Shown: positions 144 through 62,336 of the stretch, piece after piece | Layout of the letters: each line of letters begins with the position of its first letter | Position numbering within the stretch: the stretch's first letter is position 1 | The notes under the pieces: model-generated | Told to the model about the DNA's origin: nothing | Database searches by the model: none | Seen by the model: only the letters and a program-made list of their open reading frames with translations | Translations under genes and position numbers: made by a program | Source of the DNA: Adineta vaga | Taxonomy: Eukaryota; Animalia; Rotifera | Assembly (NCBI GenBank): GCA_021613535.1 | Contig: CP075492.1 | Span: 17,360,001-17,424,000 of the forward strand | Length of the DNA stretch: 64,000 nt | Direction: 5' to 3'

Positions 144-211
144 AGGATGTGGGTGCGGGTGATGGTGTAGATGTGAGTGAAGAAGCTACACTCACACCCT
201 CACCCACCCTC
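144..211. repeat. Telomere-type inverted-repeat (hairpin) element
   Basis: AGGATGTGGGTGCGGGTG...spacer...ACACTCACACCCTCACCCACCCTC. Confidence 0.8.
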
Positions 212-1162
212 GTGCTCTTGTTGCCTACGATACAACAGCATCCGTTAGTGGTGCTCAAACGTCCAGTTGATCCGGTGATATAAATCAAGGATGGGGTGTC
301 TGATAACATTGGTGTCATTGATCTAAATGACAATAATTCTGAAAACTAGATTTTAAGCAAGATCTAAACTATATAACACTATCATTATTCATCATGCAGT
401 ATAATGATTTACAAGTCACTGATTGTTTGTTACATGTATTAATTCGGCATAGTAATAAAATTGAAAGAAACCGTTTGAAAAATACGATGTAAAATACTGC
501 TAATATATAAAAATTTGCTTTCTTAAAACAAACGATGAATTCTGTATACACTCCTGTGATTGAAAGAAAAAAATATGGGGATTTTATTATTGTACTGAAT
601 TTTTATCTTTTCTTTGTCGTCGAGATAGTCTATCTATTTATTTATTTCGTTATCCCATTACGTTTATTCTAGAATAAAATACCATGAAAAACAGTGAATT
701 GTCTCATCAGAGGTGATGCAGAGGAATAAAAAATCAAAATGCATACGTTCATTGCTTCACATAACGTAAACAGAAAAGAATTGGTGTGTAATCAATTCTA
801 TAAAGTCTTCATACTTAGAACAATCCAAGAATATTGTCACAGGCTCTGAAATTCCTCATAAAAAGCTTTAAGAAACTTTCTTTGTATAAAGTCTAACAGA
901 AAAAAGAACGCTCTATTCTTCTACGCTATTTCATAATACTTCAACTAATATTATAATAATAAAATTTTGATAAGATATGTTTTGTGCGCCTGTGTCACGG
1001 TACCATCAATGCTCATTCTAGAAAAAAGGTGGGGTGTTTTTTGAATAATTTGTGGTTGAAACAAAATAGAGAACTACCGTTTTCATCGTTGGAAAGAAGA
1101 CATAAAAATACATCAAAACCTATATTCCAGACTTTCTCAATCTGTTTGTTGTAAGGTTTTCA

Positions 1163-1226
1163 AGGATATAAGTGTTGGGTGTGTGCATTCTGATTATCAT
1201 TTCAACGCATATCCACATCCACATCC
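1163..1226. repeat. Degenerate hairpin element
   Basis: AGGATATAAGTGTTGGGTGTGTG...ATCCACATCCACATCC. Confidence 0.5.
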
Positions 1227-1356
1227 AATGTCAACCTATAGAAAACCCCTTTATAAACCTTTTCTGAGACTATATTGAATTGAAAAAAGGCCTAGAGGAG
1301 AGTCTGTGTGTTAGTTAACAAACGATCCTCACAATCCCACACCGACCTAACCCATT

Positions 1357-1810
1357 TTTTGGGTCATTTTAGGCTGTTTTGATCGATTTTCGGAACGAAC
1401 GAGAAGAGCTAAAAGAAATTTGATGATAGCACAGAACGGAACTCGTCGAACTCGATCTCAAACCAGTTTTAGAACCGTGTTACATAAGGAAGACACGAAT
1501 CCGTAAAGGATTTAATAAACTTTGGGGTGATTTGGGTGTTTTAGAGGATATTAATCTAGAAGGAGGGCTTAAGGAGAAATCTGATCATTGTAGTCGATGG
1601 ATCTCATCGAGTTCGATCTGAAACGAGTGTTGGAACGGTGTTGCGCGTTAAAGACGCTAATCGGTAACCGTTTTAATGAGTTTTGCGGGGGATTTGGGTG
1701 TTTTAAGCTATTTTTAGAGTGAAGGAGTGGACATACGAGAAATCGGATGGTTAGAATCCACGGATCTCCTCTAACTCGATTTTAAACCAGTGAGACCAGA
1801 GTTTGAACGC
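1357..1810. repeat. About three diverged tandem copies of a ~160-bp unit
   Basis: The blocks GATTTGGGTGTTTT, GAAAT(C/T)(T/G)GAT and GGA(A/T)CTC..C(G/T)A..TCGAT..AAAC recur from about 1357, 1521 and 1681. Confidence 0.65.
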
Positions 1811-2312
1811 AAACATGAGCGAATCCTTTGAAGAAAAGTTAGCGTCCGTGTCTTATATATTCTACGTCTCACCGCTTATTGAAAGCAATCAGTTTTCTCT
1901 TATTTGATTTTCACGTGACTAACCTATCATCATTACAATAAGCAATCCTTTTCCTCGATTTGAAGGACGGTAAACAAAGACCATAATAAAAAAATAGATT
2001 GTTTCTTTTTGTACGAAAGAAATCAGCATTATTTATATATATTGAGAGGTATTACTTATAGACGATAGAAAGTCGCAACGTTCATTAGATTATGAAGATT
2101 TTATTTCACTTAAATTTGGTTAGTATAAATGAAAAATCGGAAATAAAAAAAAGAAGGAACTTTTGAATGAATGTTATCATCGAACAAAAAATTTGTTGGA
2201 AAGAGAAATCACAAGTGATTAAATAAAATATAAAAAAGAAAGAAAAAATAATGTTATTGATTCATAGTTCGAATAGTTTATGCTTGTTGAAAGCCAGATG
2301 GGATATTTACCA

Positions 2313-2786
2313 TTAGCCAGTACTAAAATCAGTGCAGCAGCGATCACCAAGACCATCGGGAGTACCATCACTACGACAGCAACGACGACCATCACTACGT
2401 TTATTACAACAAGCACTATGACAAGGAAGACCATTAGCATTATTATTGCAAAAACTACCACAACAAGTATCACCATCACCATCAGGTCTGCCATCATTAC
2501 GACAACAAATAGTGCCATCAGCAGTAGTAGGGCAATTAATGTAACGAGTAATAGAACAATGAAAATACCGGCAATCACGATCATTAAACATAGTAGAAGA
2601 GTAAACAACACTGCAAGTACCACCACGACGATTAACAGATAGTTTTTGCAGGAGATTGCGAACAGCTGAGCGTTGAACTAGGGGAGCGTTGTCTTGTTCA
2701 TCGCTCTCTACTTGTAATCCCATGGATAAGTTTGCGATCATGGCCAAAACAGCAATGTAAAATGCAATGGTGTTGATGCGAGCCAT
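2313..2786 (-). CDS. Secreted cysteine-rich prepropeptide (toxin/antimicrobial-like layout)
   Basis: Signal peptide, acidic pro-segment, dibasic RR site, then a 16-Cys mature region with an internal repeat DGxxCCRxDGxPDGxGDxCC (two copies); TATA-like motif near 2850-2858 on the minus strand. Confidence 0.85.
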   Translation of the reverse strand: MARINTIAFYIAVLAMIANLSMGLQVESDEQDNAPLVQRSAVRNLLQKLSVNRRGGTCSVVYSSTMFNDRDCRYFHCSITRYINCPTTADGTICCRNDGRPDGDGDTCCGSFCNNNANGLPCHSACCNKRSDGRRCCRSDGTPDGLGDRCCTDFSTG

Positions 2787-3525: not shown

Positions 3526-3593
3526 TGAAGGATGTGAGTGTCGTTTATTTATTGATCAATCCCACCATCACTCACGTCAGCACCTACCCTCAA
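3526..3593. repeat. Hairpin element
   Basis: TGAAGGATGTGAGTGTC...CACCTACCCTCAA. Confidence 0.7.
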
Positions 3594-3843: not shown

Positions 3844-3912
3844 CCTTGAGGATGTGGGTGTCATTTATTTATTGATCAATTCAACCATCACCCACGCCAA
3901 TACCTATCCTCA
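3844..3912. repeat. Hairpin element (duplicate of 3526-3593, same spacer)
   Basis: CCTTGAGGATGTGGGTGTC-ATTTATTTATTGATCAAT...CACCCACGCCAATACCTATCCTCA. Confidence 0.75.
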
Positions 3913-5742: not shown

Positions 5743-5764
5743 ACCCATTCTTACACCCTCAAGA
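5743..5764. repeat. Right arm only of hairpin element
   Basis: ACCCATTCTTACACCCTCAAGA. Confidence 0.55.
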
Positions 5765-5846
5765 TGTGTAGCTAGAAGCCAAATTTATATAATTTTAGCA
5801 GTTTCTTATCCATAATATGATGAATTTTTGACTCAGAGACGCGTCA

Positions 5847-6734: not shown

Positions 6735-6786
6735 TCTGAGATTTGGATATACGGAATCTGAATCTCAACCACACCCACACCCTCAA
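6735..6786. repeat. Hairpin element (strong right arm)
   Basis: ...ACCACACCCACACCCTCAA. Confidence 0.7.
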
Positions 6787-7498
6787 TTCATTACCTTCAC
6801 CATTTCCACGAACAACAATTTCAGTTTCATTTTTTTCCTTCACCCCAACGTATTATTAGAGCATTCCCACAATCTGCTACATAGATTTGACCAAAATCAT
6901 CATTAATTAATCCTTGATTATAAGAAAATTGATTAGGATAATTTCCTCTTCCATGTTCACCAACAACGACTACATCTTCGTTTGCATCTTTTTTCCATTT
7001 CATTACACGATGAGTGTTCCACTCTGATACATAAACAGATTGTTCAGCATCAACAAAAATAAAGGAAGATTTATTGAGTTAATTAAGTTTATTTCCACCA
7101 GCCAGTAATGTTCCTTCTTCTCACTTCATTGTCCTCCTCATCACACGCGTAAAGAAACCCATATTTATCCATTGTTAAAGCCCAACAATCAATATTCATA
7201 ATGAGAATTGCTTGTTGACTTTCACCCAAGAGCCATCGAACTGCTCGTTTGCTTCCTTGATCAGCAATTATTAATGTATTGTTTTGTTCATCAACAATCA
7301 CATCTGTTGGACGAATCAGTTGATCTATCTGTTATGTTGCCTCCTTGATTTTGCATTTAATTTTCATTCAACAATACGATGATTATTACAATCAGGAATA
7401 AAATTAATTTCATTATTATCAATTAAGATTCCATTAGGGGAAAAGAGTTGGATTAATCCGCTTCCACGTCCATTTCCTCCCACAATCATTTTCCCCAG
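6787..7498 (-). pseudogene. NHL-repeat beta-propeller gene fragment, frameshifted
   Basis: GGNGRGSG..QL..PNGILID, PTDVIVDEQNNTLIIADQG, IFVDAEQSVYVSEWNTHRVMKW, GQIYVADCGN, GNGEGNEL; frameshifts and stops; an element on each side. Confidence 0.85.
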
Positions 7499-7558
7499 CT
7501 TTGGAGGTGAGTGCGGGTATTCGTCTATTGAACATGCACACCCATCTACCCTCCAAAG
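7499..7558. repeat. Hairpin element
   Basis: CTTTGGAGGTGAGTGCGGGT...ACACCCATCTACCCTCCAAAG (9-bp perfect terminal inverted repeat). Confidence 0.8.
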
Positions 7559-12269: not shown

Positions 12270-12317
12270 AGAGCGTGTGAGTGCGGTCTTCTGTATTCAC
12301 CTACACCCACACCCTCT
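12270..12317. repeat. Hairpin element
   Basis: AGAGCGTGTGAGTGCGGT...ACCTACACCCACACCCTCT. Confidence 0.8.
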
Positions 12318-13079
12318 CTATAAATATAACGATCTACGTTCATTGTCCGTATATCCAGCTATATCTGTACATAAATGCATACATATATACTTTTGGTGTT
12401 TTTCAAACGCACCTACAGGAAAGAAAAAGTGAGCAAGAGGACAAACATAATTAATACCAACTTCAAAGACAACATAGAAATCTTACCAAAAAACTTCGTA
12501 TTTATTTCAGAATATTTTTGTGATCAAACTATTTTCCACATGGTTCCTCAACATCGAACTTTTTCACTATATTCCTTAAGGATTTTAACCATCCAACACA
12601 GCCCCATAAACAATCAGTCCATTAAATATTCTATTTTCAAAGGTTTCTCTTGTATAAAAACTTGCTGCCAGAAGAATAGACAGATGGTAACTATGCCCCT
12701 TTGTAGCGCGTGAAAAACTGCATCAAACCATGTAGATCAATAGTGCCATTGTAAAGAACTTTTTGTTCGCCTTTGGAGTGGCAATATCTCTATTGGAGAA
12801 CGAAATACTAGTGGCAGTACCATTTTGTCTCAGAGATTTGAGTTTTATTTCTCTTTCAAATGATACTATTTGCAAGCTTATAAAAGCATTTTTTCATTAC
12901 ATTCTGGTCAAAATTTGGCGTAGTTCTTCTATGGAAATTAAGTAAAACTACACTACGAAATTATCCAATGGAGACTACTGATTGATCTTCCAAATGGATT
13001 GAAAATGTAATCGTTTCATACATATTTTTGGTTAATTGAAGAACGAGCCGATTTGCGTTCTTATAGACGCCCCAGTCAT

Positions 13080-13622
13080 TTTCCCTTAGATATAATATCT
13101 TATATATCTCGACGTATGAATGAAGATGTAGATTGGAAGTCACTTATTGTAATATTATCAGATGCCACTGTACCTGGCGAAGGTGAACATAAAATTATGG
13201 ATTTTATACGTACAGAAGAATTTTCAAATTCCAAAACAAATCATGTTTTATTTAGTGCTGATTCCGATGTGGTATTACTTAGTTTAACTAGGCATTCAGA
13301 TAATATTCGAATAATGCGTCGAAAAACAGACACAATAACAGAATCATATACATTTAGAGATTTAAAATTATTACGTGAAGAAATCAAGAATGAGTTCAAA
13401 GGCGATTTGGAACGAATAATTGATGATTGGATATTCATGTGTCTTTTAGCTGGAAATGATTTTCTTCCAAATATACCATCTATTGAATTTAGTCAAAAGG
13501 ATGTGAATGATATTCTTTTTAATACTTACAAAGAATATGTACGCAAGGAGAATGACTATTTAATTGAAAATATGACACCGAATTTAATGTATTTAAAGAT
13601 TCTTTTAAAACATATTGGTGAC
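13080..13622 (+). pseudogene. 5'-3' exoribonuclease XRN1/XRN2 catalytic-region fragment
   Basis: VILSDATVPGEGEHKIMDFIR, HVLFSADSD, ERIIDDWIFMCLLAGNDFLPNIP; the frame runs straight into (GGGTGT)n. Confidence 0.9.
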
Positions 13623-13692
13623 AGGGTGTGGGTGTGGGTGTGGGTATGGGTGGGGATACAGTAAGATGCAACCACACTCTCACCCACATCCT
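13623..13692. repeat. Hairpin element
   Basis: AGGGTGTGGGTGTGGGTGTGGGTATGGGTGGG...ACCACACTCTCACCCACATCCT. Confidence 0.9.
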
Positions 13693-13785: not shown

Positions 13786-16271
13786 TTAGTTATTTTTAAG
13801 TAATTCATCAATTGTTCTCAAGGTATCATCAGAGATTTTGTTATGTGCAAGTTTCAATGAAACAAGTTGCTAAACAAAAAATAAAGATAGAAATATGATG
13901 GATAACAGAAATGAAGGATTATACTGTATGGTTTCGTAAGACAGCAATGGAATGTTGTCCTTCAGATTCGGCAATATTGTTATAAGTAAGATCGAGTACT
14001 TTTAATGACTAAACAGACAAAAGCAGTACACACTTTTTCGAAATTAAAATAAACGAAAGGTCATATTACCGTATTGGATAATAGTATATCTGCTATCGCG
14101 TGTGCTCCTTCGTTTTCTATTTTAGTCTTCGCAATATTTAGTGCAGTAAGTGTCTACATCGAAGATGGAATTAAAAGTGAAGAGTTAACATGAAAACTAT
14201 ATCTACTGTCATATGTGGTAGTGCTTCAGCTAAGACTTTTGCTCCTTGAACACCAAGATTGTTTCCTCGAAGATCGAGGCTAGTAAGTGTCTATAAAAAA
14301 AGAATAAAACTTAGTAGGAAAGAGTTCGAAAAACACATAATACTAACACGATTGTGTATGAGTGCCGTAACGAGGTATTCTGTTGCTTTTGTTCCAAAGT
14401 AATTATCACGAAGATTCAATGTCAAAAGTGTCTAATTGTGTATATTTTTAGAATGATATATAAAAAAATTCCGAAGGAAATAAATTTTACAGTTTTTTTG
14501 ATAATATCATAGCTAGATATTGTACTTCACTGTCTTCAATTCCATTCGATTGAAGATCTAATGTAGTAACTGTCTAAATATACAAAATATATCACTATAA
14601 TACCAACAAAATGAAAATTGTGCAGAATATACTCGATTATCTTCTAATCCGTTCATTAGATATTGAAGTGCCTCATTTCTAATTCTATTTGATGGAAGAT
14701 AAAGTGTTTCAATTGTCTAGATGAAAATAAAAAGTCAAATATGAATATATGAAAAAGTACAACCAAACAAATCTACTGATTTATTTCTTAATAAACGAGC
14801 CACATATTGTGCTCCAAATATTCCAATTTGATTGTTGCCCAAATGAAGTGTAGTCAATTTCTATATATGAAATATATATATATAAATAACAAACTTAAAG
14901 AAGAAAATAGTAATGGTATTTACTGTGTACTTCTCTAATGCATCAGTTAATTGTTCTAAGCGTTCAACGTCAAGATTCGTTCCTTGAAGATCAAGTACTT
15001 TGAGCGTCTAAGTTTAGAAAAATCATTACAGAGGTTAAAGAAACAATAAAAAGTGAATTTACTGTATTATTTGATAATGCATCAGTTAAATCACATATAA
15101 CTTGCTCACCCATAGAAAGCCCGTGAAGATTCAATGTAGAAATATTCTACGTGAAAAAAGATAGGAAAGAATCGTTTTATATGAAATAAATTTATACTTC
15201 TTCAGTAATCAAGTTATCGTCAGTAGTTCTATATTCAATCAAACGGCAAACACTATTGATAGGCATAGCATCATATCTAATCGAAAGTTCATGATCATTC
15301 AGATAAATTGGTATTGTATAAATGGCAACATATGATGATTTGATAAGATGATCACAAGTGGTAAACCATTGTTTATTATAGAGCCAGAATGGTGTTCGAA
15401 ACGAAGCAATAATTGAATTAACAGTATGTACACGAGCATCTTTTCGAATACGATAAGTAAAACAAAATTCAAATTTTTTTAATTTCGATAAACGAATTTG
15501 TATCAGTTGTTCCCAAAATGAACCATCAAATACGGGACCATAGACTGATCTAAAGGATATCAATTTTAGATAGGTTAAAGATGGAACAGATATCAAAATC
15601 AATCGAATGTATTCAATTAAGAGTTGACAATCAAGTATAGTTAAAGATATTAATTGTTGATATTTTTCATCAGCTCGTGATGAATCGTTGACTTCATCAT
15701 TACTAGAAAGCTCGAAATAACCTATGACGAATGTTTTTAAATTTGGTAAACAGTGGAGAATATGACGATATTGAGAATAATTACAAGCAAGAAGTGTTAA
15801 ATGTTGTAATGTAGAATGTACTGATGAGAGTATGTTTTCGATCAAATTCTCGAGATTATTGAAATATAATTGAGTAGGAATATGTTGATTGCTGTCACAT
15901 AAAACAATGGTATGCCGTGCTTTGCTCCATCTATCGACTCGACCGAAAGTTAACGAGTTAAGTTTCGAGAATTGTTGTATATCAAAAATGGAAGAAAATA
16001 AACCAATTATATGTTCACGACTTGCATCCCTATCAGAGAAAACGATCGAACGAATATTTTCCAATGAAACTAAATGAGTCACCAATAAAATATCATTTTC
16101 AGACATTGAAGAAAAATCAAGTTGAAAATTCTTATAAGATCTAATTACATTATAGAATCTTTTACATACTGGACGTAGCGAACGAAGAATAGTAATCGTA
16201 TCCAATCGATCGAGAATACTACAAAGAATTTCAGTTGGAAAATTAATAACATCCATGATGTTACTCTGCAT
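13786..16271 (-). CDS. F-box protein with C-terminal RI/NLRC3-like LRRs (one large exon plus about 10 single-LRR exons)
   Basis: F-box (FPTEILCSILDRLD..LRPVCKRFY); exons of about 84 nt such as TLTSLDLRGNNLGVQGAKVLAEAL separated by introns of about 55 nt; stop at 13786. Confidence 0.85.
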
Positions 16272-16495
16272 CGTATTTTAGGTGAATAAATGAAGTAACT
16301 TAAACTTTCAAAACATTAGTCAGAGATAAAGTCTGTGGGAAAAAATGAAAGAATAAAAACAACACATGGCATAAGTTGTAAAAACAAAAGAATGAAAAAA
16401 TATTAATAGAAATTTTTTCTTTTCTTTTACTCAAGTTCTCCCATGATGCTTTACTCGCATCATTCTACAGAGCGGCGAGAATAAAAATCTGACGT

Positions 16496-16543
16496 GGTGT
16501 GGGTGTGGGTGAATACAAGAGATCCTCACCAACACCCTCAAGA
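16496..16543. repeat. Hairpin element
   Basis: GGTGTGGGTGTGGGTGAATACAAGAGATCCTCACCAACACCCTCAAGA. Confidence 0.9.
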
Positions 16544-19385: not shown

Positions 19386-19432
19386 AAGGGTGTGGATGTG
19401 GGTTAAAGATCATACTCACACCCATACCCTCT
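19386..19432. repeat. Hairpin element
   Basis: AAGGGTGTGGATGTGGGT-TAAAGATCAT-ACTCACACCCATACCCTCT. Confidence 0.9.
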
Positions 19433-20179: not shown

Positions 20180-20232
20180 TGTGGATGTGGGTGTGATTGA
20201 ATATTCCTCACTCATCCACACCCTCACCCTCA
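20180..20232. repeat. Hairpin element
   Basis: TGTGGATGTGGGTGTG...CACTCATCCACACCCTCACCCTCA. Confidence 0.85.
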
Positions 20233-40400: not shown

Positions 40401-43400
40401 ATTACGATGAACTAAAATTGAAAAAAAATCATTCTTTTTTTCCAAATATATTTATTGTATATCGAATGCATAGAAATGATATTACCTTGTTCTGTTGTTT
40501 TTTTACAAATTGTAGTCATTTTGAAAATGAGTTTTACAAGATAAGGTGTTAAAATACGTAGTGAAACTGCAATACCACCAATCATTGACACTAATATTAT
40601 AATTACGCCAACAAAAGTTGTTTTATTACTTTTTTGAAAATAAGAACAATATATTGGTGCACAAGATTCATAAAAAAGTTGATATGACGAAAAAGAATTC
40701 CATTGTTCTACCATCAGTAGTTTCATCATGGTTGAAATCGATGTATTAGGAGGAAAACGACTTACTGTTGGATCATAAACGAGAGGATTTATAGGAAGAG
40801 GAAGTGGTGATGATTCAGAAACGACGTGACTAGTAGATGTTTTTCTTAAATAGCTTAATAATAATATAAAACAATCTGAATCGATATATAAACATTGAAG
40901 TGTTGAGAAAAAAAGAGAATCAATTATAAGACAACCTCGAACCGAACCAGACATATTAACAATAAGATTTTTATGATTGTTACTGTTAAAATCAAAAAGA
41001 TGTTTGTAAATAACAGCCGGCATTTGACTATCAGGATTTATAGAGCAAGAATACTTGATCAATGTTGAATTGATTTCTTGTATTCCGTTTGGAATAAATA
41101 AAAGCTAGAAATATAAGTTTTTTTAATTTATATTTTCAAAATTGTTTGAATAGACAAATGATATTCTTATTTAGTCACTACTTATCAATCGTTTTTGATG
41201 GAATCTAACTTATATCATATTTGAAAATAATATTCAACATTTTCATATGACATGCAAATTGTTCTTCTCACTATACTCATATTGATAAGATAATAAAATG
41301 AATAGGAAATTCTTTAAATTCTCTTTGAAAATGTTGTAAATCAGCAGCGAGTATCTCCTTTATAGTACTGAATTAGTTTTAGAAAGTCACATACTCGTAC
41401 TGCTTGATTATTTGTTGTCTCATCCATTATTACTTCTACAGTCAGATCAGTTTTTAAATCGTTCATGTCCGTTTTTCCTACTGCTCCGTAAAATTGATCA
41501 ACTTGGATAATAAGAGGTACGATCTCTTTCAAGAGATGAAAGTTATACTCTGTTGATTGATAAAATTGTTTGAGACTTGTAACGAGTTGTTCATCAAAAT
41601 TAATTTCATTTATCATAGAAGAAACGATAAATACTTGTGAAAGAAATCTCTGAATAGCATCATAAATTGTTTTATTAGCTAATTGACAAAGATCAGATAA
41701 AATTTGAAATTGTACATATGCTTGTTGACGCCAATCATTAATTATTTGATCACCTGAACTTATCTTTAATATCGAAATCCAATGCTCAGTGACGAAACCA
41801 CTTGAACATATTTGATGAAAAGTAGGAGAAAATGATATAAATGTTTGAAAAGATATTGTTTTATTCGAACATGGACATTGAACTGCAGTTGAATAGATTC
41901 TTTCTAATGATTTGTAAGTTGTTAATGAAGGATTTAATTCTGTTATGGTCACGATTTCATTGTTTAATGTTGTGAACAGACAAAGAATACATATCGAAGC
42001 TAATTTTTAAAAAGAAAAGTATTGAAGATGATCGAACATGTTCTTTTTTTATCTCATATCTTCTAAAGTTATTTTAAACAATTTTCTTTACTATTTAACT
42101 ATAATTTTCAGATTTGACACTTCAAATTGAATATCTCTACGCGAGTGAAATGCAACATAGAAGAAAGTCAATGTTATGTGTAATGAGAAAAAACTTTACC
42201 AAATAATAAAATTAAATAAACACGAGTAATAATTCTTTGCTGTTTGATATTTTCTTCTGTTCGGTGATGAATTTTTTTAAATAAATTTAATCGTTTCATT
42301 GATTGAATTACTGTGATTGTATTCGTATTTTGTTGATCTATAAAATACAAAAAAAAGAAGAAATTCAATCAATTAATAATGAGAACCAGATTTTATTAGA
42401 AATCTACTTGAATTTTCATTTGAACAAGCTTTAGATTCGAATATGATATCAATGAAATATGATGCAAACAATCTAAGTATAATGATGAGGCCACCATAAA
42501 GACTAATGAAAAGAGTAATTGCATAAGATAAGACTACAGGAGTTTTTGTTGTATAAGTACACATTGATGGTGAACATTGATTAAAATATGCCGAATAATT
42601 GATTTTTTTTGACCAATTGACAACGAAAAGATTGTTTAAATAATTAATAACAGACATATTTTCATGTTTTGAAGATAAAATTGAATTATTCCAATTGATA
42701 TCCATCTGAAGAAAGAGAATATATTTAATAAAAATCTCCCATCATATTTTACAAACTTGGTTCAAATTTGGAAAATATTCCAACAGTAATTGAACACATT
42801 CTAATTCGTATAAACAATCTAATGTGCTTTCAAAGATTGCTTCAAGTGGAATACATCCTGCAAAGAAACCTTTAACGATTGTAGATTTCGGTATTGCATA
42901 TAAATGAATTCTCTGCGAAAATTCTAATGGATCAGAAGTATTCACAATTATAGAATCAGTTAACAAGCATTTTAAATTCATATCATTATTAGAAGTATAT
43001 TTTACTGATGATGTCGCTGTGTGATACGTTTGATCCGTAGTCTGTAATATGGTAATTATCCTATTAGTGCCGAGAGCTGAGACAAAGTTGATTCCTCGAA
43101 TTGCCATTCTCAAATAATCCACGAATGACATGATTCGACCACGTGCATCGTTCTTCTGAAATTCAATGGTACCGTTTACGTTCAGTTCAACTTGTCTCTC
43201 AGAAAAAAGTTCAATGGTAACAAATTCAGTATTGTAAACATTGGTTTGAATTTGAGAAATTAGTTCTTCCGAAAAGGAACAAAACTTTGACAAAAGTTTA
43301 AACTAAATGAAAAAAAAGAAACTGACTTTTAGAATATGAGGGGTGTGGGTGTTCGTCGAGGTATCTCTTCTATACCCACACGCTCAAGATGGAATATATC

Positions 43401-43916
43401 TATGACTAACCTGCGAAAAGGCCGTTGTTCGAAAATCTATGGGCAAGAAAAGACTTGCCTTTTCAAAATATAATCGTTCAATCCATTGTTTATCAACGAA
43501 AACACTCGAACATACTGAATGCATTGTAATATTGTTAAAAACAAAACTTTTATATGGTATTGTAATTGTTGTACATGGACATGAAAGTGTTTTACCATGT
43601 TCAAACGATAATTTAGCAAAAATATCAGGTGTTATATTTGAAATAACAATCGTTTCAGATTCAATTTTTGTTATAGTAATGTAAAATAATATATAAAGAC
43701 ATACTAAAAGAAAAAATATCACTTTGTTATTTCGTTATGTCTTGTATGTTATTTACCTGTGAGAAATATAACGTACAACCAAGTTTTATATTTCTGATGT
43801 TTAAGAACTAAAATTGGATCTTTGATATCTTCATCATAATCATCTTTGTCTAACATAAAAAGATTATAATTGCGAACTTTTTTTAAAATCCATTCAAAAC
43901 TAGCTTTTATCTTCAT
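37496..43916 (-). CDS. Large multi-exon membrane protein: three repeated TM/Cys-rich ectodomain modules plus C-terminal FG-GAP/VCBS repeats
   Basis: A module (CPC..., GCxPxE...STLxCxY, Y..C.P..C.Y, GGL) occurs three times; DxNxDxxxD repeats in 37496-38641; ATG at 43916; short introns. Confidence 0.8.
43337..43389. repeat. Hairpin element inside intron 43303-43410
   Basis: TGAGGGGTGTGGGTGT...ATACCCACACGCTCAAGA. Confidence 0.9.
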
Positions 43917-44169: not shown

Positions 44170-44963
44170 TTATATTTATGCTTAAGTTTTTTACAGCTGT
44201 TTAATATTATTTTTTCTAGATCTTATTTACAAATATTTGCAGAACTAAAAGCAAGCCTTGTTGCCTATACCATATGCGATGAAAATTCATTAGAAAAATA
44301 ATTTTTTCTCATTTTTTTTATTATTTTCTGTTACTAAAACTAGCTATAAACTTGAAACTCTGTGTGTGCTTAGTATCAGTTGTCCTTCAGAAACTGTTAA
44401 AGTTTTAAGAAAAACTCGTTGATGTTAAATAGATAAGCGAACTATTAGAGAAATCATTGCAGAGGTTGTGCAACATCTCTTAGAAATATCTCACGTAGTT
44501 TATCCAAGAGGATTTTTTATCATCTCTATTTATTATACTTAGTGCAAACTTTCATTAAACAGAAAATAATGTGCTGGGCTTAGTAAATTTGAAAGAAAAA
44601 AATTCTGTGTTGTTTCTCTTATGATATTTGACATAGGATCTGTTTAAGCGTTTTACAAAATAAACTAAAATCAAGAAATAGATCTCCAAGAATGCTAATT
44701 GCACTCTTTCATTGTAAAACAAAATTCGGACAATTTCGCGTGAACACAGATACAAATCTGATTCATACGCTGGTGAATACGATTTTATGATAAAATAAAA
44801 AATGGATATGAAGACTCATAAATATCCTCTAATTAGTAATATAAAGAATGTCCATCCTATACCGCAGTGTTATAGATATTCATGATGCACACGCTCTTAA
44901 AGATATATCATGAATACCGCTAACACCGCTATGAGTATATCGTCATGGTTTTAGAGGTATAGT
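44170..44963 (+). repeat. Segmental duplicate, copy 1
   Basis: Near-identical to 50475-51234. Confidence 0.95.
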
Positions 44964-45015
44964 TGGGTGTGGGTGTGGGTATCTCCTTTTCTCGTATACC
45001 CACCCACACCCTCAA
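44964..45015. repeat. Hairpin element
   Basis: TGGGTGTGGGTGTGGGTATCTCC...ATACCCACCCACACCCTCAA. Confidence 0.95.
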
Positions 45016-45053
45016 CACATTGCTGATAGATCTATAACAGTATATTCATTCTA

Positions 45054-45415
45054 ATGGCAAAAGCAAATAATAAACAAGGTTGTCTTAAATGTGGAAAATT
45101 CAAATCTACATCAAAATGTACTGAATGTTCCGATGATTTTTGTTTTGATCATCTTGCACAACATCAGCAAGATTTAAGTTTATTGTTAGATTATATTGAA
45201 AATGATCGTAATCTCTTCATACAATTATTTAACGAATACAAAGACACAATGGAAATCAATAAATTTACTGAATAAATGGATCAATGGGAAAAATAATCAA
45301 TTAGTAAAATTCATCAAACAGCATATGAATATAAACAATTAGTAATAAAATATATGAATGAAAATATACAAAAAATTGAAATGGATTTTAATGAACTAGA
45401 TTTAAAAGAACTTGA
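45054..45415 (+). pseudogene. B-box-like zinc finger plus coiled-coil N-terminal fragment
   Basis: CxxC...CxxCxxxFCxxHxxxH, then DQWEK*SISKIHQTA with in-frame stops; ends at an element. Confidence 0.8.
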
Positions 45416-45463
45416 TGAGTGTGGGTGTAAATATAACACCCACACCCGCCCACACCCTCAAGA
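45411..45463. repeat. Hairpin element
   Basis: CTTGATGAGTGTGGGTGT-AAATATA-ACACCCACACCCGCCCACACCCTCAAGA. Confidence 0.92.
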
Positions 45464-49667: not shown

Positions 49668-50418
49668 TATATTGATGGGACAAACAGCAAGCTTTTAAAT
49701 CTAAAACTATGTGAGAATGAGAATAGACAGAAACTTTTAAGGTCATTAATTATTTCCACCTAATCCGAATGCTACTATTTAGCCTTGTGCAATCATATCA
49801 TTCTAAACTTTTCTGATAAAAACTTTAAATCAAAGTCAATACTAAGCATTTATCACCAAATAAAAAATCTGGTCGATAAAGATATGAAACAGAGAGAAGT
49901 AACAGATTTCATAGTCGAGTGAGTCAGGTGAGTGCAGTAAGAGAAGTATTTACTTTGTATACACTGAATCATAATTAGATGGACGAAAAGGAAGTTTTTT
50001 TATTCCCACTATAGAAGAAAGGCTGTATTATGTTAAAATAATAGTAATAGATGAGAATGTTTTTCTAAGTGTTCTGGTTGCTTTTTTCCATTCTTTCAAA
50101 AAACGAGCGTGTTTTTTATGATACGCTTTTCAATCTATTCTTTCCTAATGCAAACAAAAGAAAACTTGCGTTTTCATTTCTTCGTCAATATAAGACTGTT
50201 ACAAAGAAAGATACACCAATGAAGGAGAAAAACAGCGTCAGATGTTTGCTTTAAGATGGAATTTTTTTCTCGAGAGTATGCATGAAGACGGTGTTGGGAA
50301 CAGTGTGATAACGTCTAAAATGTTGGCATCACAAACACTCCGAACACTACCGAAGTGTCTATATGAAGTTTACCTTCAAAATCATCAATGTTCCATCACT
50401 TCTATTGCATCTAGACTG

Positions 50419-50474
50419 TTGAGGGTGTGGGTGTTAGACAGATGTAGTATCCACACCCTCACCCACACCCACCC
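50419..50474. repeat. Hairpin element
   Basis: TTGAGGGTGTGGGTGT...TATCCACACCCTCACCCACACCCACCC. Confidence 0.95.
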
Positions 50475-51234
50475 TTATATTTATGCTTAAGTTTTTTACA
50501 GCTGTTTAACATTATTTTTTCTAGATCTTATTTACAAATATTTGCAGAACTAAAGGCAAGCCTTGTTGCCTATACCATATGCGATGAAAATTCATTAGAA
50601 AATAATTTTTTCTCATTTTTTTTATTATTTTCTGTTACTAAAACTAGCTATAAACTTGAAACTCTGTGTGTGCTTAGTATCAGTTGTCCTTCAGAAACTG
50701 TTAAAGTTTTAAGAAAAACTCGTTGATGTTAAATAGATAAGCGAACTATTAGAGAAATCATTGCAGAGGTTGTGCAACATCTCTTAGAAATATCTCACGT
50801 AGTTTATCCAAGAGGATTTTTTATCATCTCTATTTATTATACTTAGTGCAAACTTTCATTAAACAGAAAATAATGTGCTGGGCTTAGTAAATTTGAAAGA
50901 AAAAAATTCTGTGTTGTTTCTCTTATGATATTTGACATAGGATCTGTTTAAGCGTTTTACAAAATAAACTAAAATCAAGAAATAGATCTCCAAGAATGCT
51001 AATTGCACTCTTTCATTGTAAAACAAAATTCGGACAATTTCGCGTGAACACAGATACAAATCTGATTCATACGCTGGTGAATACGATTTTATGATAAAAT
51101 AAAAAATGGATATGAAGACTCATAAATATCCTCTAATTAGTAATATAAAGAATGTCCATCCTATACCGCAGTGTTATAGATATTCATGATGCACGCGCTC
51201 CTCAAGATATATCATTATGATTTTAGAGGTATAG
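50475..51234 (+). repeat. Segmental duplicate, copy 2
   Basis: Near-identical to 44170-44963, with an indel near the right end. Confidence 0.95.
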
Positions 51235-51339
51235 CTGTGTTAGCGATGTTCGCAGAATGTTAATGTACTACTTCTATTCTAGGACCAATCAAAATTGGTA
51301 TTCGCAGATATTCGTGGTAATAACTCGATAAACTTTACC

Positions 51340-51384
51340 TGTGGGTGTGGGTTGTTGGTATCTCCTCTTCTTTTACACCCTCAA
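51340..51384. repeat. Hairpin element
   Basis: TGTGGGTGTGGGTTGTTGGTATCTCCTCTTCTTTTACACCCTCAA. Confidence 0.85.
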
Positions 51385-51597
51385 TGCAATCTCTAGTTCA
51401 TGAATACAACGATAAGACAGTAAATATCGACACAGTAATAAGACAATCGATCAATATCTTTCGTGAAAATAAGTTTATAGGTATAATCTTATTTTATTAG
51501 TATCAATTTGTGAAAACATTCATGATTAAATAATTTGATTAGAAAATAAAGCTTGATAGTCAATTCTGAAGGAGAAATGTGATCTTGTAAATATCTG

Positions 51598-54292: not shown

Positions 54293-54457
54293 TGTGAGTG
54301 TGAGTGTTGGTACCCAAGCAGACAAACCGAAAAAAAGCGTTAAATAAGTCGGTGTGCATATGAGTTTAGTTCAAGAAAAGTGTTGAAACACAAAGTCACA
54401 CCCATCTACGCACACCTTACTCATATAGGACCTTACACTGTCGCACCCACAACCCTC
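54293..54457. repeat. Compound or degenerate hairpin element
   Basis: TGTGAGTGTGAGTGTTGG...CACACCCATCTACGCACACC...CACCCACAACCCTC. Confidence 0.6.
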
Positions 54458-56826: not shown

Positions 56827-56892
56827 CGAGGGTGTGGGTGCGAAAGAAGTAGTGGTATCCTCACTCATCCACACCCACATCCACCCACACCC
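56827..56892. repeat. Hairpin element
   Basis: CGAGGGTGTGGGTG...TATCCTCACTCATCCACACCCACATCCACCCACACCC. Confidence 0.92.
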
Positions 56893-57033
56893 TGTTATGA
56901 TCCAAGCACACATATATGTTCAGAAACTGGCACTATTGTATCATGTTCTAAGGCATGTGGAAATAAATGTTACGATGCAACAATAAACATTTGTATTAAT
57001 GACACCATACGTAATATCGGTGAAGATATCTGC
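56893..57033 (+). pseudogene. 47-codon Cys-rich repeat coding fragment (galaxin/CBM52-like CYD motif)
   Basis: CYDPSTHICSETGTIVSCSKACGNKCYDATINICINDTIRNIGEDIC is open from edge to edge between two elements. Confidence 0.8.
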
Positions 57034-57101
57034 GAGGGTGTGGGTGGAAGATAAGGTCTCTGTTTCATTGCTCACCCTCACCCACACCCACACTCTCAAG
57101 A
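57034..57101. repeat. Hairpin element
   Basis: GAGGGTGTGGGTGG...CTCACCCTCACCCACACCCACACTCTCAAGA. Confidence 0.93.
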
Positions 57102-57325
57102 ACAATTTGAAAAGGCTGAAACATCATTATATACCATATTTCTCTGATTAACTATTCGTATTTCGATAAGGAAATATTCATTCAAAAAAATGAAGAAAAA
57201 CATTATTTTAACCTATTTTACATTTGACAAATAATTAATTACAAATATAGTACGACAACAAGTTTACATAAGATTCAAAAATGCTTGATTATAATAAATA
57301 AAGTGACTTGACGAAGTTAGAAAAT

Positions 57326-58291
57326 TTATTTGCACATTAAAATATTTTTAGCTTCATGCCGAAATGTTTTTGATACAAACAAATTATTATAAAACGTAAT
57401 ACAAAATGGAATAAAAACGAAGAAAGTACTTACACCAATCATAAACTTCTGAACTTGGCTGTCAACAACACTTTTTGAACTAATGGGACTAATTTGTCCA
57501 TATACTAAAAGAATGGACAGCATTAAAGAGAAAAAAAGATAGACACTGGTATCGGCAAGTACAATTCGAATTAGTAGACGATCCTTGGAATGAATAGCTC
57601 GCATACCAGTATTGGTTGTTGTTTGAATGCTTCTCAAAACAAAAACAGGACCAACACGACCTATATTCCGAACATTTTTTATGGTCCATAATCCAAAAAT
57701 TAACATCAATAAAGGAATGAGAATTCCTTTGACTATAGCTGTGTAATAGCTTATAAATCTGTAATAGTTACCAAACTGGAAAAAGCAAAAATTAACACCC
57801 GGCGCAGTCGGTTGAATACGAACCAGGGCGAATGTATGGCTTTCAGCTAACAAACAAAATAATGTCACACACGTAATACATAAATAAGCAAAACGATGAG
57901 TACTGCGTTGTCTTGTGAGAGCATTTCGAGAGGTCACTAGTACTCGATCAACCGAAGCCAATATTATGTAAGATGGACCTAGTATATCGAACAAAAGCAG
58001 TGCATAAAAACGAAAACGACAAAGAGTTAGATTGTACAAAGTAGGATCGATGTTATAACCCATTGATAGTGTTTGTGGTAATATAACTGTATATATTCCA
58101 AGTAAACTAACAGTATTATACGCTACGAAATAGATTGAACATGGATTTTTACGAAGATTCTTTTTGGTGAAAATAACCAAACTAAGTATACAACTGACAG
58201 TACCTAAACCCATCAGAATTGGTCCACCAAGTTTGTATAAAAATTGTTGAGCTAATGTTAATAAAGCGATGAAATCAGATTCCGAAGACAT
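57326..58291 (-). CDS. Orphan rhodopsin-family GPCR
   Basis: 7TM; LRKNPCSIYF, LASVDR, FVSKTFR. Confidence 0.9.
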   Translation of the reverse strand: MSSESDFIALLTLAQQFLYKLGGPILMGLGTVSCILSLVIFTKKNLRKNPCSIYFVAYNTVSLLGIYTVILPQTLSMGYNIDPTLYNLTLCRFRFYALLLFDILGPSYIILASVDRVLVTSRNALTRQRSTHRFAYLCITCVTLFCLLAESHTFALVRIQPTAPGVNFCFFQFGNYYRFISYYTAIVKGILIPLLMLIFGLWTIKNVRNIGRVGPVFVLRSIQTTTNTGMRAIHSKDRLLIRIVLADTSVYLFFSLMLSILLVYGQISPISSKSVVDSQVQKFMIGVSTFFVFIPFCITFYNNLFVSKTFRHEAKNILMCK

Positions 58292-58754: not shown

Positions 58755-58807
58755 GAAGGGTGTGGGTGTCGGTTGACATATCCTCTCATACTCATACTGA
58801 TACACCC
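58755..58807. repeat. Hairpin element
   Basis: GAAGGGTGTGGGTGTCGGT..ATATCCTCTC-ATACTCATACTGATACACCC. Confidence 0.85.
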
Positions 58808-59042
58808 GAAAATTCAAATATGTTCAAGTAATCTAATGTAATAGGATGGAGAAAAAACAGCGCGTGATCTGTGTTTATGTTAGACTATATAAGATAATAG
58901 AAAAGATGTGTGCATTTTTCTTATCATTTTGAGTTTCGATCAACAGAAACATACAAAAAAAGGTAAATAATAATATTCTCAAAGTACTGAAAACATACAA
59001 GATCCATAAACATTCTTGAATTAATTTTTGTATTTAATCGAA

Positions 59043-60767
59043 ATGGTATCGATATTCAACTGGTTAACCTTTATTTCGTTGTGTATAAAATGCTTATCGA
59101 TTCGAGGAGAAATATTTTATGTTTCAACATTTGGTGCTTTTTCCGATGACAATATTGATGACACAACTGGAATTCAATTAACTATCAAAACAGCCATTAA
59201 TTATGGACCAAATAATATAGTTATCTTTGGTTTCGGTATATACAATTTATCATCATCAATTATCATATCGAATGCAACTAATTTGACAGTTCAAGGCCAG
59301 GGAATCGATCAAACATTCTTAATTGGCAACTTACCATTGGAGATATTCTCGGTTCAAAATTGTGAAGAATTAACAATTAGTTTGCTATCGATTGATTTTG
59401 ATCCATTGCCTTTTACAGCTGGTTATATTGTTAATGTCAATGATACGTATATTGATGTTAAGATTCAACCACCTCATCGAGCTGATGTTGATAAACAAAT
59501 TCGATCTATCCTTCGATACGATCCCGTACATATGAGACCGGCTTTTGGTCAAAATACGTATGAAATTTATCAGGTTCCACCAACTAATGTGAATACCAGT
59601 CTTGTATCTGCCAATATATTGAGTATGCCTTTAAGATTACCTTCGAAATTTGCTATAGGAGACGCTGTTGTTGCTCGTTACAATAATCCATACAACGCTA
59701 TAGCTGCAATCAATGTGACAGCTTTTACTGTACAATCAATAACTATATATACATCTTGGTCAATGGGTCTTGTTACAGTAAAATCGCGACGTTTAAATAT
59801 TATTAATTTTCATGTTCTACGACGCAATGGACGTTGGTTAAGTTCATCGACAGATTGTATGCATTTTATAAGTATTAAAGAATATATTAATTTAATCGAT
59901 AGTAAATGTCAAGCAATGGGTGATGATGGATTTAATGTTCACTCGACGTTTTTACTTGTTACGAAAATTATTAGTTCAAAGACAATCATTGTTACAGCGA
60001 TGAATGGCACTGATTCTTATGTTGAGAACGGAACACATCTAGAATTTAGTAGTAATGAACAACCATTTACAGTTCGTAAAATAGGTATCGTTGCTTCATC
60101 AACACGTTATAATTCAAGTTCACGTTTATTGACCTTTACTACTTCGATAAATGCCAGTCTTAATTATTTTGTTTCGAGTGCTGATACACCTGTATTAACT
60201 ATAAGAAATTTCACTGTAGAAAATAATCGAGCACGTGGCGTTCTATTAGGAACACGAAATATTGACATAAGAAATTCAGTATTTAATCGAACAAGTGGTT
60301 CAGCCGTTCTTATTCAACCGTCATTATATTGGTACGAAGGACCTGTAGCTCGGAATATTACATTAATTAATAATCTTTATATTAATTGTAATGAAGGTAT
60401 TGCAAAAGATCAAGGTATCATAACAATTCGACCAAACCCAACTCAATTAGTACCAGTTATTAATGGTATTCGAATAGAATCATCGACATTTCTCTTCGGA
60501 AATTATAGTCTAGGTCTTATTCGATCTACTAATGCTGATAATGTGTTTCTTAGCGGTAATTACATCACTACAAACATCACAACACCTATCATTTTATTGT
60601 GTAACAGTCGAAATATTACTGCAAGTAATAATACAGTTTTTAACCATCGAGCAAAACCTAATCAATATTATACATTTGATACAATGTATCCATGTCAAAT
60701 GAACTTAAGTAGTCTTATTGATTTACCTTCATCCGCATTTAACTCCTCATTTGCTCCGCCTGTTTAA
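59043..60767 (+). CDS. Secreted right-handed beta-helix glycosidase (GH110 alpha-1,3-galactosidase-like, bacterial type)
   Basis: FGA..DD..DDT..IQ, LSIDFDPLPFTAG, STDCMHF, MGDDGFNVH, NNRARGVLL, WYEGP; intronless. Confidence 0.8.
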   Translation: MVSIFNWLTFISLCIKCLSIRGEIFYVSTFGAFSDDNIDDTTGIQLTIKTAINYGPNNIVIFGFGIYNLSSSIIISNATNLTVQGQGIDQTFLIGNLPLEIFSVQNCEELTISLLSIDFDPLPFTAGYIVNVNDTYIDVKIQPPHRADVDKQIRSILRYDPVHMRPAFGQNTYEIYQVPPTNVNTSLVSANILSMPLRLPSKFAIGDAVVARYNNPYNAIAAINVTAFTVQSITIYTSWSMGLVTVKSRRLNIINFHVLRRNGRWLSSSTDCMHFISIKEYINLIDSKCQAMGDDGFNVHSTFLLVTKIISSKTIIVTAMNGTDSYVENGTHLEFSSNEQPFTVRKIGIVASSTRYNSSSRLLTFTTSINASLNYFVSSADTPVLTIRNFTVENNRARGVLLGTRNIDIRNSVFNRTSGSAVLIQPSLYWYEGPVARNITLINNLYINCNEGIAKDQGIITIRPNPTQLVPVINGIRIESSTFLFGNYSLGLIRSTNADNVFLSGNYITTNITTPIILLCNSRNITASNNTVFNHRAKPNQYYTFDTMYPCQMNLSSLIDLPSSAFNSSFAPPV

Positions 60768-60804
60768 AATAACACGATGAATAAAGTTTTAAAAAAAACT
60801 TTTT

Positions 60805-60831
60805 TTGAGGGTGTGGGTGTGAATGGGTATA
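60805..60831. repeat. Left arm of hairpin element
   Basis: TTGAGGGTGTGGGTGTGAATGGGTAT. Confidence 0.8.
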
Positions 60832-61037
60832 TCATTATGTGCTTTTATAATATTACGGTAGTCTCTATTGATCCAATATCTTTGTTATCAACTAAATACT
60901 TCAATCATCTCAATAATAAATTAATCACATCTGAGTATATTAGTATATTCATTTCATTTATTTGTTATTAAGCAGAGTTTGTAGCGAACGCCTCGAGTAA
61001 ATTAACTTCAACAAAAAATTGTGCAGCAACATTTTAT

Positions 61038-61358
61038 CTAACTAAAACCAAGATGACAATCACAACAATAATCACAAGAATCTTGGAAAGCTTGACAAAT
61101 AGCAAGCAAACAGCAGAGAATGCCAAGTATAACAATAACAGCACCAGCAATCCAAGCATTGCGAGCGTGAAAATTACTCTCATTGTTGCTATGAACAATA
61201 ACACCAACAGTCGCAACAATAACACCAATAGTAATGAAAACACCAATAAAACAGAAGGTCTTACAATGATCACGACAAGCTCCACCACCTCGAAGAGGAG
61301 GAGATTTCTTCATCTTAACTTCAGATGTATTACATGTTGAAACAGGTGCTGTTGGTTC
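61038..61358 (-). CDS. Small two-TM, Cys-tailed membrane protein (last exon)
   Basis: Two hydrophobic helices and a CC/CDYCCDC tail; probable splice acceptor near 61359. Confidence 0.55.
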   Translation of the reverse strand, partial: EPTAPVSTCNTSEVKMKKSPPLRGGGACRDHCKTFCFIGVFITIGVIVATVGVIVHSNNESNFHARNAWIAGAVIVILGILCCLLAICQAFQDSCDYCCDCHLGFS

Positions 61359-62280
61359 TAAATAATCAAAGGAAATATTTTCAGTTTACTTTTATTAAAG
61401 AACTTAACAAAATAGACAATACATTTTGATATTCAACACCATACGCAATTACTTAAGATGATAAAGAAATATTTGATCTACTTATATGTTATTTGTCTAG
61501 TCTTGTTGCAATATTTATCGACATCAATAATCACCTGTTAGAAATCAAAACATTCCCTGATTCGAGCACGACTTATTCGCATTGTAGTGAAGTACATGAT
61601 AACAGTCTTCAAAAAATATTTTATGCAGAAGAACAAATCATTACAAAATATAGCCTATTAGTTTTTATAGATTGTTTCTAAAGTATCTTAGGAAAAGCAT
61701 ATATAGTATCTGGCGTCTTGTTAAAGAATAATCTGTACAGATGGTGTAAGTCACTAGTAAGATCGATGGAACCAAACTGATTTAAAATGTTTAAAAGTTT
61801 TTTTTAGATTACCGAATATTAACGTAAAATGAAATAGTTTTCTTTTCGTGAACCCCTCTTAACTCGAGTATAAGTGATGATTGTAATTTAAGGCACGTCT
61901 TTCGATGAGCTTATACACGCCTGAAAATAGAAGAAGAATATTCAGAACACTTTTCATTTTACCTTTCATTTCGATTTTGGTTTCCATATCGATTGAGCTA
62001 GGAAGATAAAAGAGGCATTGAATAAATATCTACGTACTTTAAAAAAAGAAAAACTAAGGAACTCAGCTAAATGCTTTAATACAGTTGAAAGAAAAGAAGA
62101 AATCAAAACTTACCTTTGCAATTACAAATCTCTTCTATTATATTTTCAACTTGTTGTTTCAACAAACAACGGAACAGTACGCTTTTTATACGTGCATTCT
62201 CTCTCTCTTATTTTTTGCTTTCTTCCTTGCTTTCCTAGAATTGTGTAACTCGGTAAAAACCAACTATAACTCGGTAGTAA

Positions 62281-62336
62281 GGATGAGTGACGATGAGGGT
62301 GAGAATTTTCTCTCAACATGCAATCATCCTAAAAGA
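62281..62336. repeat. Degenerate hairpin element
   Basis: GGATGAGTG..TGAGGGTGAG...TCATCCTAAAAGA. Confidence 0.45.

Follow-up and report, generated by a model that had tools for sequence, protein, structure and literature searches.

What are the short palindromic units of telomeric repeats that lie between genes and gene fragments towards a chromosome end of the bdelloid rotifer Adineta vaga, and how did they arise? Bdelloids survive massive DNA breakage and, to our knowledge, their load of foreign genes exceeds that of all other animals. The region considered here, called the window throughout, is a stretch of 64,000 nt on chromosome C3 (C3:17,360,001-17,424,000) of the chromosome-level A. 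vaga assembly (100.8 Mb in six contigs); C3 is 20,354,754 bp long, and about 2.9 Mb are left between the window and its right end. Each unit consists of a G-arm, (GGGTGT)n, a short spacer and a C-arm, (ACACCC)n, and the telomeric repeat of A. vaga is (TGTGGG)n (PMC8494291; PMC7943196). A previous sequence-only reading of the window regarded the units either as attC-like sites in an integron-like array of gene cassettes or as the product of a system joining telomerase-healed DNA fragments. The first idea fails and the second fits, and that interpretation is, as a whole, partly supported. We hold, with somewhat better than even confidence, that the units are scars of DNA-end joining, in which both ends received a telomerase-type cap and were connected head-to-head via a templated linker.

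Detection and polarity of the units

The strict scan, a fuzzy search for a G-arm, a gap of 0-90 nt and a C-arm, returned 19 matches in the window, none in 10 shuffled sequences, none in the reversed sequence and a single match for the opposite order, C-arm before G-arm. A looser arm detector found 53 arms in the window against 0-8 in the shuffles, and the arms in the window form 18 clear G-then-C pairs. About 11 further sites noticed by the sequence-only reading are partial, with one arm clear and the partner degenerate or missing (1163, 3526, 5743, 6735, 23849, 26498, 32697, 51340, 54293, 58755 and 60805), and five are weak or degenerate (22954, 45756, 52318, 53074 and 62281). In all, the window contains 18 clear and about 11 partial units, which have no counterpart in the shuffles.

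The polarity of the arms is almost invariable. In a 264-kb stretch made of the window and the next 200 kb, the pairs of arms lying within 60 nt of each other comprise 49 G-then-C, 1 C-then-G, 4 C-C and 3 G-G arrangements, while the strict pattern occurs genome-wide 209 times as G..C (plus 87 in another phase) and never as C..G. The proposal that each interval reads C-arm, cargo, G-arm, like a doubly capped linear DNA, is therefore upheld by a polarity that is absolute across the genome. The units are predicted to fold as DNA hairpins with energies of -11 to -17 kcal/mol. Those at 20180, 23847 and 24443 are spanned, together with both of their flanks, by contigs of three independent DNA studies (2013, 2015 and 2022), which excludes an assembly artefact. 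The head-to-head telomere-repeat units of the window are confirmed as a real feature.

Arms at the ends of homology

When 44.5 kb of the window were searched against the complete genome and the matches merged into blocks, 44 block ends resulted, nine of which abut an arm in telomere polarity, with 0.4 expected (P=2e-10). An arm of the wrong polarity is found at one block end, and degenerate arms at two others. The clearest example is an internal fragment of an XRN exonuclease gene (13130-13621, plus strand; Pfam XRN_N 161-240 and XRN_M 3-73), 80% identical to a locus at C1:13.477 Mb. The fragment matches its relative through ...TTGGTGA and is cut at 13621, where the G-arm of five repeats of the unit at 13622-13692 begins and the relative continues as a gene. 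Similarly, a Sec61-alpha fragment (23864-24440; 78% identical to C6:0.216 Mb) has an arm at each end, and the blocks at 19430, 20230, 23608 and 23646 behave alike. An NHL-repeat fragment starts at 6786 in more than a dozen matches, right behind the clear C-arm of a unit with a degenerate G-arm (6735-6786), and its homology ends at 7480-7495, next to the degenerate unit that closes it (7499-7545). The amputated gene fragments described between the elements were thus recognized correctly, as the XRN, Sec61-alpha, NHL and Kelch fragments all stop at arms. In total, at least nine units occupy homology breakpoints with no part of the gene on the far side.

Two other cases are informative. A 742-bp direct duplicate at 50475-51215, derived from 44170-44911 and 99.2% identical to it, has its left breakpoint capped by the perfect C-arm of a clear unit (50418-50475; spacer family B, sense on the minus strand), and its high identity points to a recent event. 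The right end of the duplicate (51215) is uncapped and lies 123 nt short of the next G-arm. At C3:176,300-176,405, a tract of about 100 nt of TGAGGG/TGTGGG cuts a 93% identical copy of window positions 57308-58036 at ...GATTGTA, where the window copy continues; this tract is directed towards the centromere, and the DNA after it is non-telomeric and has no C-arm. The two copies also have units at differing upstream positions. The overlap between the junctions and the prefix that precedes the arms (described below) is 0-3 nt. When the 264-kb stretch was compared with itself, no more than 3 of 226 block ends fell at arms, because partial paralog matches dominate there.

The arms therefore begin at the points at which similarity to intact copies ends. 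Breaks healed in the manner of telomeres should look like this, and the suggestion that telomerase-healed fragments were joined agrees with this placement. The onset of telomeric repeats at breakpoints in 3'-end polarity, a defining feature of de novo telomere addition, is seen at the XRN and Sec61 fragments, at the blocks at 20230 and 23608, at the tract at C3:176,300-176,405 and at the 99.2% identical duplicate. Chromosome healing is also recognized by its place at a chromosome terminus, and all units of the window are internal, 2.9 Mb from the end.

Prefix, arms and spacer families

The conserved part of the units extends further outwards than had been stated earlier: one outer end reads (C)ATCTTGA-GGGTGT... 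and the opposite one ...ACACCC-TCAAGAT(G). TTGA directly precedes the first GGG in 31 of 108 arms, and the bases before GGG are A in 68% of cases at position -1, G in 64% at -2 and T in 66% at -3. The best copies have CATCTTGA-GGGTGT... at one side and ...ACACCC-TCAAGATG at the other, and the prefix is present in A. steineri and Rotaria too. In the 264-kb stretch, arm lengths range from 12 to 62 nt. The length of one arm does not correlate with that of its partner (Spearman 0.15, p=0.29), and the difference is at least 6 nt in half of the pairs, indicating that the two arms are separate tracts. Within spacer family C, arms vary from 2 to more than 8 repeats.

The spacers had been described as mostly different from one another. 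This view needs correction. Many spacers can be sorted into a small number of conserved families with a fixed orientation, whose members occur at unrelated loci on each of the six chromosomes. Family C, ...GGGTAT-ATCTTCTTCACTC-ACATCTAC-ACCC, has at least 44 copies (44 listed), family D, ...GGGTATCTCCTCTTCTTTCAC-ACCC, has at least 26 (26 listed), and families A and B are recognized as well. The right flanks of the members of a family are unrelated to one another. In A. steineri and Rotaria, a motif of the type ...TCTTCTTCAC adjoins the C-arm and is related to the A. vaga spacer families. A half-unit at C5:734.6 kb consists of a spacer and a C-arm without a G-arm, located after the 3' end of a gene; it was considered as the source gene of an RNA and rejected, being a half-unit past the end of that gene.

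Distribution in the genome and in other bdelloids

Clustering near chromosome ends was one of the checks proposed for the units, and it is clearly seen. On C1 (18.1 Mb), the 42 strict matches listed occupy two zones, one at 0.13-0.68 Mb and one past 12.1 Mb, and the part between is free of them. The terminal 3 Mb of the chromosomes, which make up 36% of the genome, contain 35 of the 44 listed copies of the family C spacer (P=3e-9), and a few copies are located in the chromosome cores. By these pattern matches, on which the contrast between cores and subtelomeres is based, the units concentrate within about 3 Mb of chromosome ends.

The search in related bdelloids, also proposed at the outset, was productive. 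Contigs of A. steineri and of Rotaria sp. contain units with matching polarity, 13 in the order G-then-C versus 1 C-then-G. The single A. ricciae contig examined has no units, nor do two further ENA contigs, and a 31-mer of family C gave no matches in a metagenome scan.

Relation to Athena/Terminon retroelements

Telomeric tails are known from the Athena/Terminon retroelements, which end in (ACACCC)n and (TCACCC)n; the 3' end comprises a hammerhead ribozyme followed by one of these tails, which attaches to G-rich overhangs (PMC6431247). Such hammerhead-bearing ends exist in the A. vaga genome, and two of them are in the 264-kb stretch, as compared to 49 units. They lie at C3:17,498,206-17,498,830, about 550 bp apart and 74 kb beyond the end of the window; within the window, no Rfam match was obtained. 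Both ends consist of the hammerhead, a T-rich segment of 16-21 nt, a C-rich tail and TCAAGA, and the closing ...CCCTCAAGA is common to them and to the units. The possibility that spacer and C-arm are the 3' self-cleavage product of an Athena RNA was considered and rejected, as the 3' segments linked to hammerheads are unlike the spacer families and none of the listed copies of families C and D is preceded by a hammerhead. An origin of the spacer from the Athena hammerhead end is kept as a possible ancestry only.

Proposed mechanism

The joining of capped ends would proceed as follows. At a break, the 3' end on each side would be extended by a telomerase-type reverse transcriptase. Copying would often start in the RNA just 3' of the template, giving the shared prefix ATCTTGA, after which a variable number of GGGTGT or GGGTGA repeats would be added. 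On one side, copying would continue beyond the template and take in the neighboring 15-25 nt of the RNA, which would become the spacer. The run-on product would end in ...TACCC and could pair with the G-rich tail of the other end, so that fill-in would yield left DNA, G-arm, spacer, C-arm and right DNA in this order. The predicted template RNA would read spacer (e.g., ...TCTTCTTTCAC), then ACCCACACCC, then UCAAGAUG. If the same break is rejoined, the result would look like a 50-bp insertion. If unrelated ends are joined, capped genes and fragments would be assembled into a mosaic, which chromosomes would tolerate mostly within their last ~3 Mb. The half-unit at C5:734.6 kb may represent a case in which the partner end was uncapped.

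The strength of this proposal differs from step to step. The capping step is well supported by the arrangement of the sequences: the fixed 3'-end polarity, the arms at breakpoints and the independent arm lengths all suggest a template-directed addition to each end separately, and the prefix, less well conserved the farther it extends from the repeats, agrees with the same process. Furthermore, deletion breakpoints of A. vaga carry neotelomeres and Athena fragments (PMC13564844), which indicates that the capping step occurs in this species. The spacer, which sits beside the C-arm and has a defined far end, ...GGGTAT, fits a run-on into template-adjacent RNA. For the enzyme, for the RNA (a telomerase RNA or an Athena-like RNA) and for the bridging step, we rely on inference.

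Several observations weigh against this mechanism. The genome search found no stand-alone family D spacer with its template and without an upstream G-rich tract, and the hammerhead motif CTGATGA...GAAA is upstream of none of the ~83 listed copies of families C and D, so that no source gene has been identified. The existence of several spacer families would require several template RNAs or copying at the DNA level, and many spacers belong to no family at all. Finally, the one clean case of a same break rejoined is an intron (43339-43386, discussed below) compared with ~70% identical paralogs, not with an orthologous empty site, and no de novo event has been observed.

A broader possibility, which we put forward tentatively, is that bdelloids have a routine cap-and-bridge repair, whereby a telomerase-type reverse transcriptase would cap both ends of any DNA fragment and an RNA-templated linker would stitch them, building the foreign-gene-rich subtelomeres and capturing broken or foreign DNA. 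On the end-joining reading, the units are sequence-level traces of thousands of earlier junctions that can be counted, dated and compared, and they suggest that repair by reverse transcription at DNA ends is frequent and not a rarity. The predicted prefix and spacer can be compared with telomerase RNA, and the signature of the units can be searched at junctions formed after irradiation or desiccation. As for annotation, many of the "genes" in unit-rich regions are capped fragments.

Alternative explanations

A different view is that the unit is a tiny non-autonomous mobile element, either foldback-like or similar to a miniature inverted-repeat transposable element (MITE), or a retroelement of about 50 nt copied by the Athena reverse transcriptase, inserted whole with its termini CATCTTGA...TCAAGATG, while the gene truncations beside it would have arisen later, by deletion or by ectopic recombination between copies. 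Spacer families that are conserved between unrelated loci and have symmetric termini of 8 nt, the stable hairpin and a copy number resembling that of a transposon family speak for it, as does one simple insertion in a pre-existing intron: the unit at 43339-43386 lies within a 110-nt intron of an intact minus-strand gene, and the same intron is about 55-60 nt long and without the unit in two ~70% identical paralogs. However, the suspected ATATTC duplication at this intron unit is imperfect, and among 12 units with both termini, a small sample, flanking direct repeats were not in excess over those of random flank pairs, so that the target-site duplications of an ordinary MITE, which the sequence-only reading had named among the signs that it was wrong, did not appear. 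Contiguous flanks at an empty site were seen only in this intron, whereas at the units of the breakpoints, nine or more, homology stops at the arm instead. In addition, arm lengths are free within a family and uncorrelated between the arms, pure telomeric tracts and solo arms cap breakpoints too, and the window contains neither an autonomous partner nor a transposase. An ordinary MITE therefore fails on target-site duplication and on the fixed length of its repeats, while for contiguous flanks the intron and the breakpoint units point in opposite directions, and we regard a mobile element of any of these kinds as unlikely. Somewhat less probable still is that the ends were capped as in the end-joining model and the linker was copied from DNA: a G-tailed end would anneal to an existing G-arm, copy its spacer and C-arm, dissociate and use the new C-rich end to pair with the other G-tail by synthesis-dependent annealing, producing lineages without a master gene. 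This would agree with the lack of a master gene or a hammerhead-linked copy for families C and D, with families that resemble diverging lineages, with the thousands of potential templates in the subtelomeres and with the homology-driven break-induced repair used by A. vaga (PMC13564844). On the other hand, the origin of the first units would stay unexplained, the unrelated right flanks of family members would require copying to break off exactly behind the C-arm, and a spacer motif common to Adineta and Rotaria suggests a constrained template and not neutral drift.

The two remaining explanations can be dealt with more briefly. The integron analogy, in which the hairpins would be attC-like sites and a recombinase would move whole gene cassettes, took its appeal from hairpin-forming imperfect inverted repeats placed between single genes. 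It fails on every feature tested and is very improbable: a Pfam scan of the 30 open reading frames (ORFs) of at least 120 aa in the window found no integrase, recombinase, transposase or reverse transcriptase; the cargo is in both orientations, bears introns and often consists of internal fragments, unlike integron cassettes, which are single and mostly promoterless ORFs that share one orientation and each end in an attC; arm lengths are free; two ~93% identical cargo copies differ in their boundaries, with no sign of whole-module movement; and the arms are telomeric repeats in strict end polarity. A mis-joining of reads at short telomere-like repeats, the other outcome that the sequence-only reading would have accepted against itself, can be dismissed with near certainty. 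The repeats are indeed short and numerous, and short-read contigs often break there, but the contigs of the three studies run through units and flanks, the same structures occur in the A. steineri and Rotaria assemblies, and old, mutated copies are present.

Units and neighbors along the window

The cargo of the window includes TPR, F-box, G protein-coupled receptor (GPCR), FG-GAP, NmrA, GDSL lipase and nuclear-receptor-like genes, a Kelch fragment and a GH110-like gene. It lies on both strands and comprises spliced genes with introns as well as internal gene fragments.

The first part of the window opens with a clear unit (144-209) whose spacer is family C-like, sense on the minus strand, followed by a degenerate, old copy (1163-1227). 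The unit at 3847-3900 has a CTTGA prefix and a degenerate C-arm, and a diverged sister copy lies at 3526-3590. A solo C-arm ending ...CCCTCAAGATG is found at 5743-5785, ahead of the two units that enclose the NHL fragment. At the unit at 12271-12318, a repeat family 76-88% identical to many loci stops at 12272, the start of the G-arm. Past the XRN fragment and its cap, a clear unit also ending ...CCCTCAAGATG (16494-16540) is situated just beyond an F-box gene (15192-16271).

Two clear units introduce homologous blocks: behind the one at 19387-19431, a block related to C1:12.43 Mb begins at 19430, and behind the one at 20179-20232, which is among those spanned by contigs of the three studies, a block related to C1:10.789 Mb (83%) begins at 20230. 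The minus-strand gene at 20349-21983 has a nuclear-receptor ligand-binding-like domain and is covered by spliced contigs that reveal three introns of 50-62 nt; these contigs come from a run guessed to be RNA and end about 117 nt before the neighboring unit. If this guess about their source is right, at least one cargo gene is spliced and expressed.

The near-perfect, almost spacerless unit at 23606-23647 has one block ending at 23608 and another beginning at 23646. The latter is a 206-bp repeat (23646-23851), 97-99% identical to copies on C3 and C6, with a C-arm on each side, and another genomic copy of it is bounded by a full unit; it is probably the end of a transposable element. The solo C-arm at 23847-23864 marks the point at which that other copy of the repeat has the full unit. 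Beyond the Sec61-alpha fragment follows a clear unit ending ...TTCAAGAT (24443-24500). At 24444-24452, a second form of the contigs, present in three DNA studies, is 126 letters longer where the G-arm begins and differs in its diverged flanks, and it is probably the other haplotype.

Further on, a unit whose G-arm is clear and whose C-arm is short (26499-26545) adjoins the GDSL lipase and GPCR genes, and is followed by one with a degenerate G-arm and a clear C-arm (32697-32760), one with a long spacer of 60 nt (33434-33536) and a clear one ending ...CCCTCAAGAT (37292-37351), whose spacer belongs to family D, sense on the plus strand. The minus-strand region at 37496-43916 contains an FG-GAP gene and then a tandem run of related transmembrane-protein genes; this pairing recurs in A. 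ricciae contigs, in other ENA contigs and at many A. vaga loci. After the intron unit come two clear units, one with a D-like spacer (44962-45016) and one with a very short spacer (45415-45461).

To the right of the 742-bp duplicate, the unit at 51338-51385 combines a clear G-arm and a spacer of family D with a C-arm that is short and ends CCCTCAA, and a degenerate G-arm is accompanied by a distant, degenerate C-arm at 54293-54455. Two clear units, at 56827-56894 and at 57032-57098, the second ending ...CTCTCAAGA, bracket a micro-interval of 137 bp (56895-57031), for which a genome search gave no match elsewhere. The unit at 58756-58830, with a clear G-arm and a degenerate C-arm, is upstream of the GH110-like gene, an intronless plus-strand ORF (59028-60767) resembling bacterial-type GH110 alpha-1,3-galactosidases (PDB matches down to E=3e-21). 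Its ~70% identical paralogs are in chromosome cores, at C4:9.4 Mb and C1:4.5 Mb, and the ORF is likely an old horizontal acquisition. A solo G-arm with a TTGA prefix (60805-60825) stands 38 nt past its stop codon.

Comparison with known systems

The sequence-only reading knew of no eukaryotic system with this structure. Close precedents do exist, namely vertebrate interstitial telomeric repeats with a fragment derived from telomerase RNA (TERC-ITS; PMC8537989) and the A. vaga neotelomeres with Athena fragments (PMC13564844). The bdelloid G-arm/spacer/C-arm units are not described in the literature searched, a search whose scope did not extend to Gladyshev and Arkhipova 2007 and Arkhipova et al. 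2017.

MITEs and foldback transposons resemble the units in being short, palindromic, abundant and grouped in families, whereas the units lack a target-site duplication, have free arm lengths and are located at homology breakpoints. Human 2q13 is the relic of a head-to-head telomere fusion, with (G-strand)n followed by (C-strand)n. Relics of this type are single, large and due to the fusion of whole chromosomes, unlike the units, which are 40-70 bp long, very numerous, provided with a putatively templated spacer and placed between genes or fragments.

Athena/Terminon ends share with the units a C-rich tail after a short T-rich segment, the closing ...CCCTCAAGA, the subtelomeric location and the host genes caught between them. 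In contrast, the units have no hammerhead and no ORF, and possess an inverted G-arm. Moreover, the Athena model yields direct repeats, while direct arrangements in the 264-kb stretch number 7 against 49 units. As to chromosome healing and the neotelomeres of A. vaga (PMC13564844), telomeric repeats start at the breakpoint in 3'-end polarity, as in the units, but a healed end normally stays a chromosome end, whereas a unit would correspond to two capped ends that were joined, are now internal and have a recurrent linker.

The closest parallel is offered by TERC-ITS, in which interstitial telomeric repeats and a telomerase-RNA-derived fragment were inserted at double-strand-break sites (Nergadze 2007, PMC2246262; Sola 2021, PMC8537989). 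Like the units, these loci combine short telomeric tracts with a non-telomeric piece. The vertebrate loci were inserted in one step at break sites; for the units, the comparable empty site is that of the intron and its two paralogs. Three of 41 loci have two head-to-head tracts, which the authors explained by the action of telomerase on both sides of the break, and at a Xenopus locus the TERC fragment corresponds to the stretch directly adjoining the template (PMC8537989). The non-telomeric part of TERC-ITS comes from telomerase RNA, whereas for the spacer of the units such an origin is one candidate beside an Athena-like RNA. TERC-ITS amount to tens of loci scattered over 30 vertebrate genomes; the units number hundreds to thousands in one genome, are nearly all head-to-head and subtelomeric, and often join unrelated DNA.

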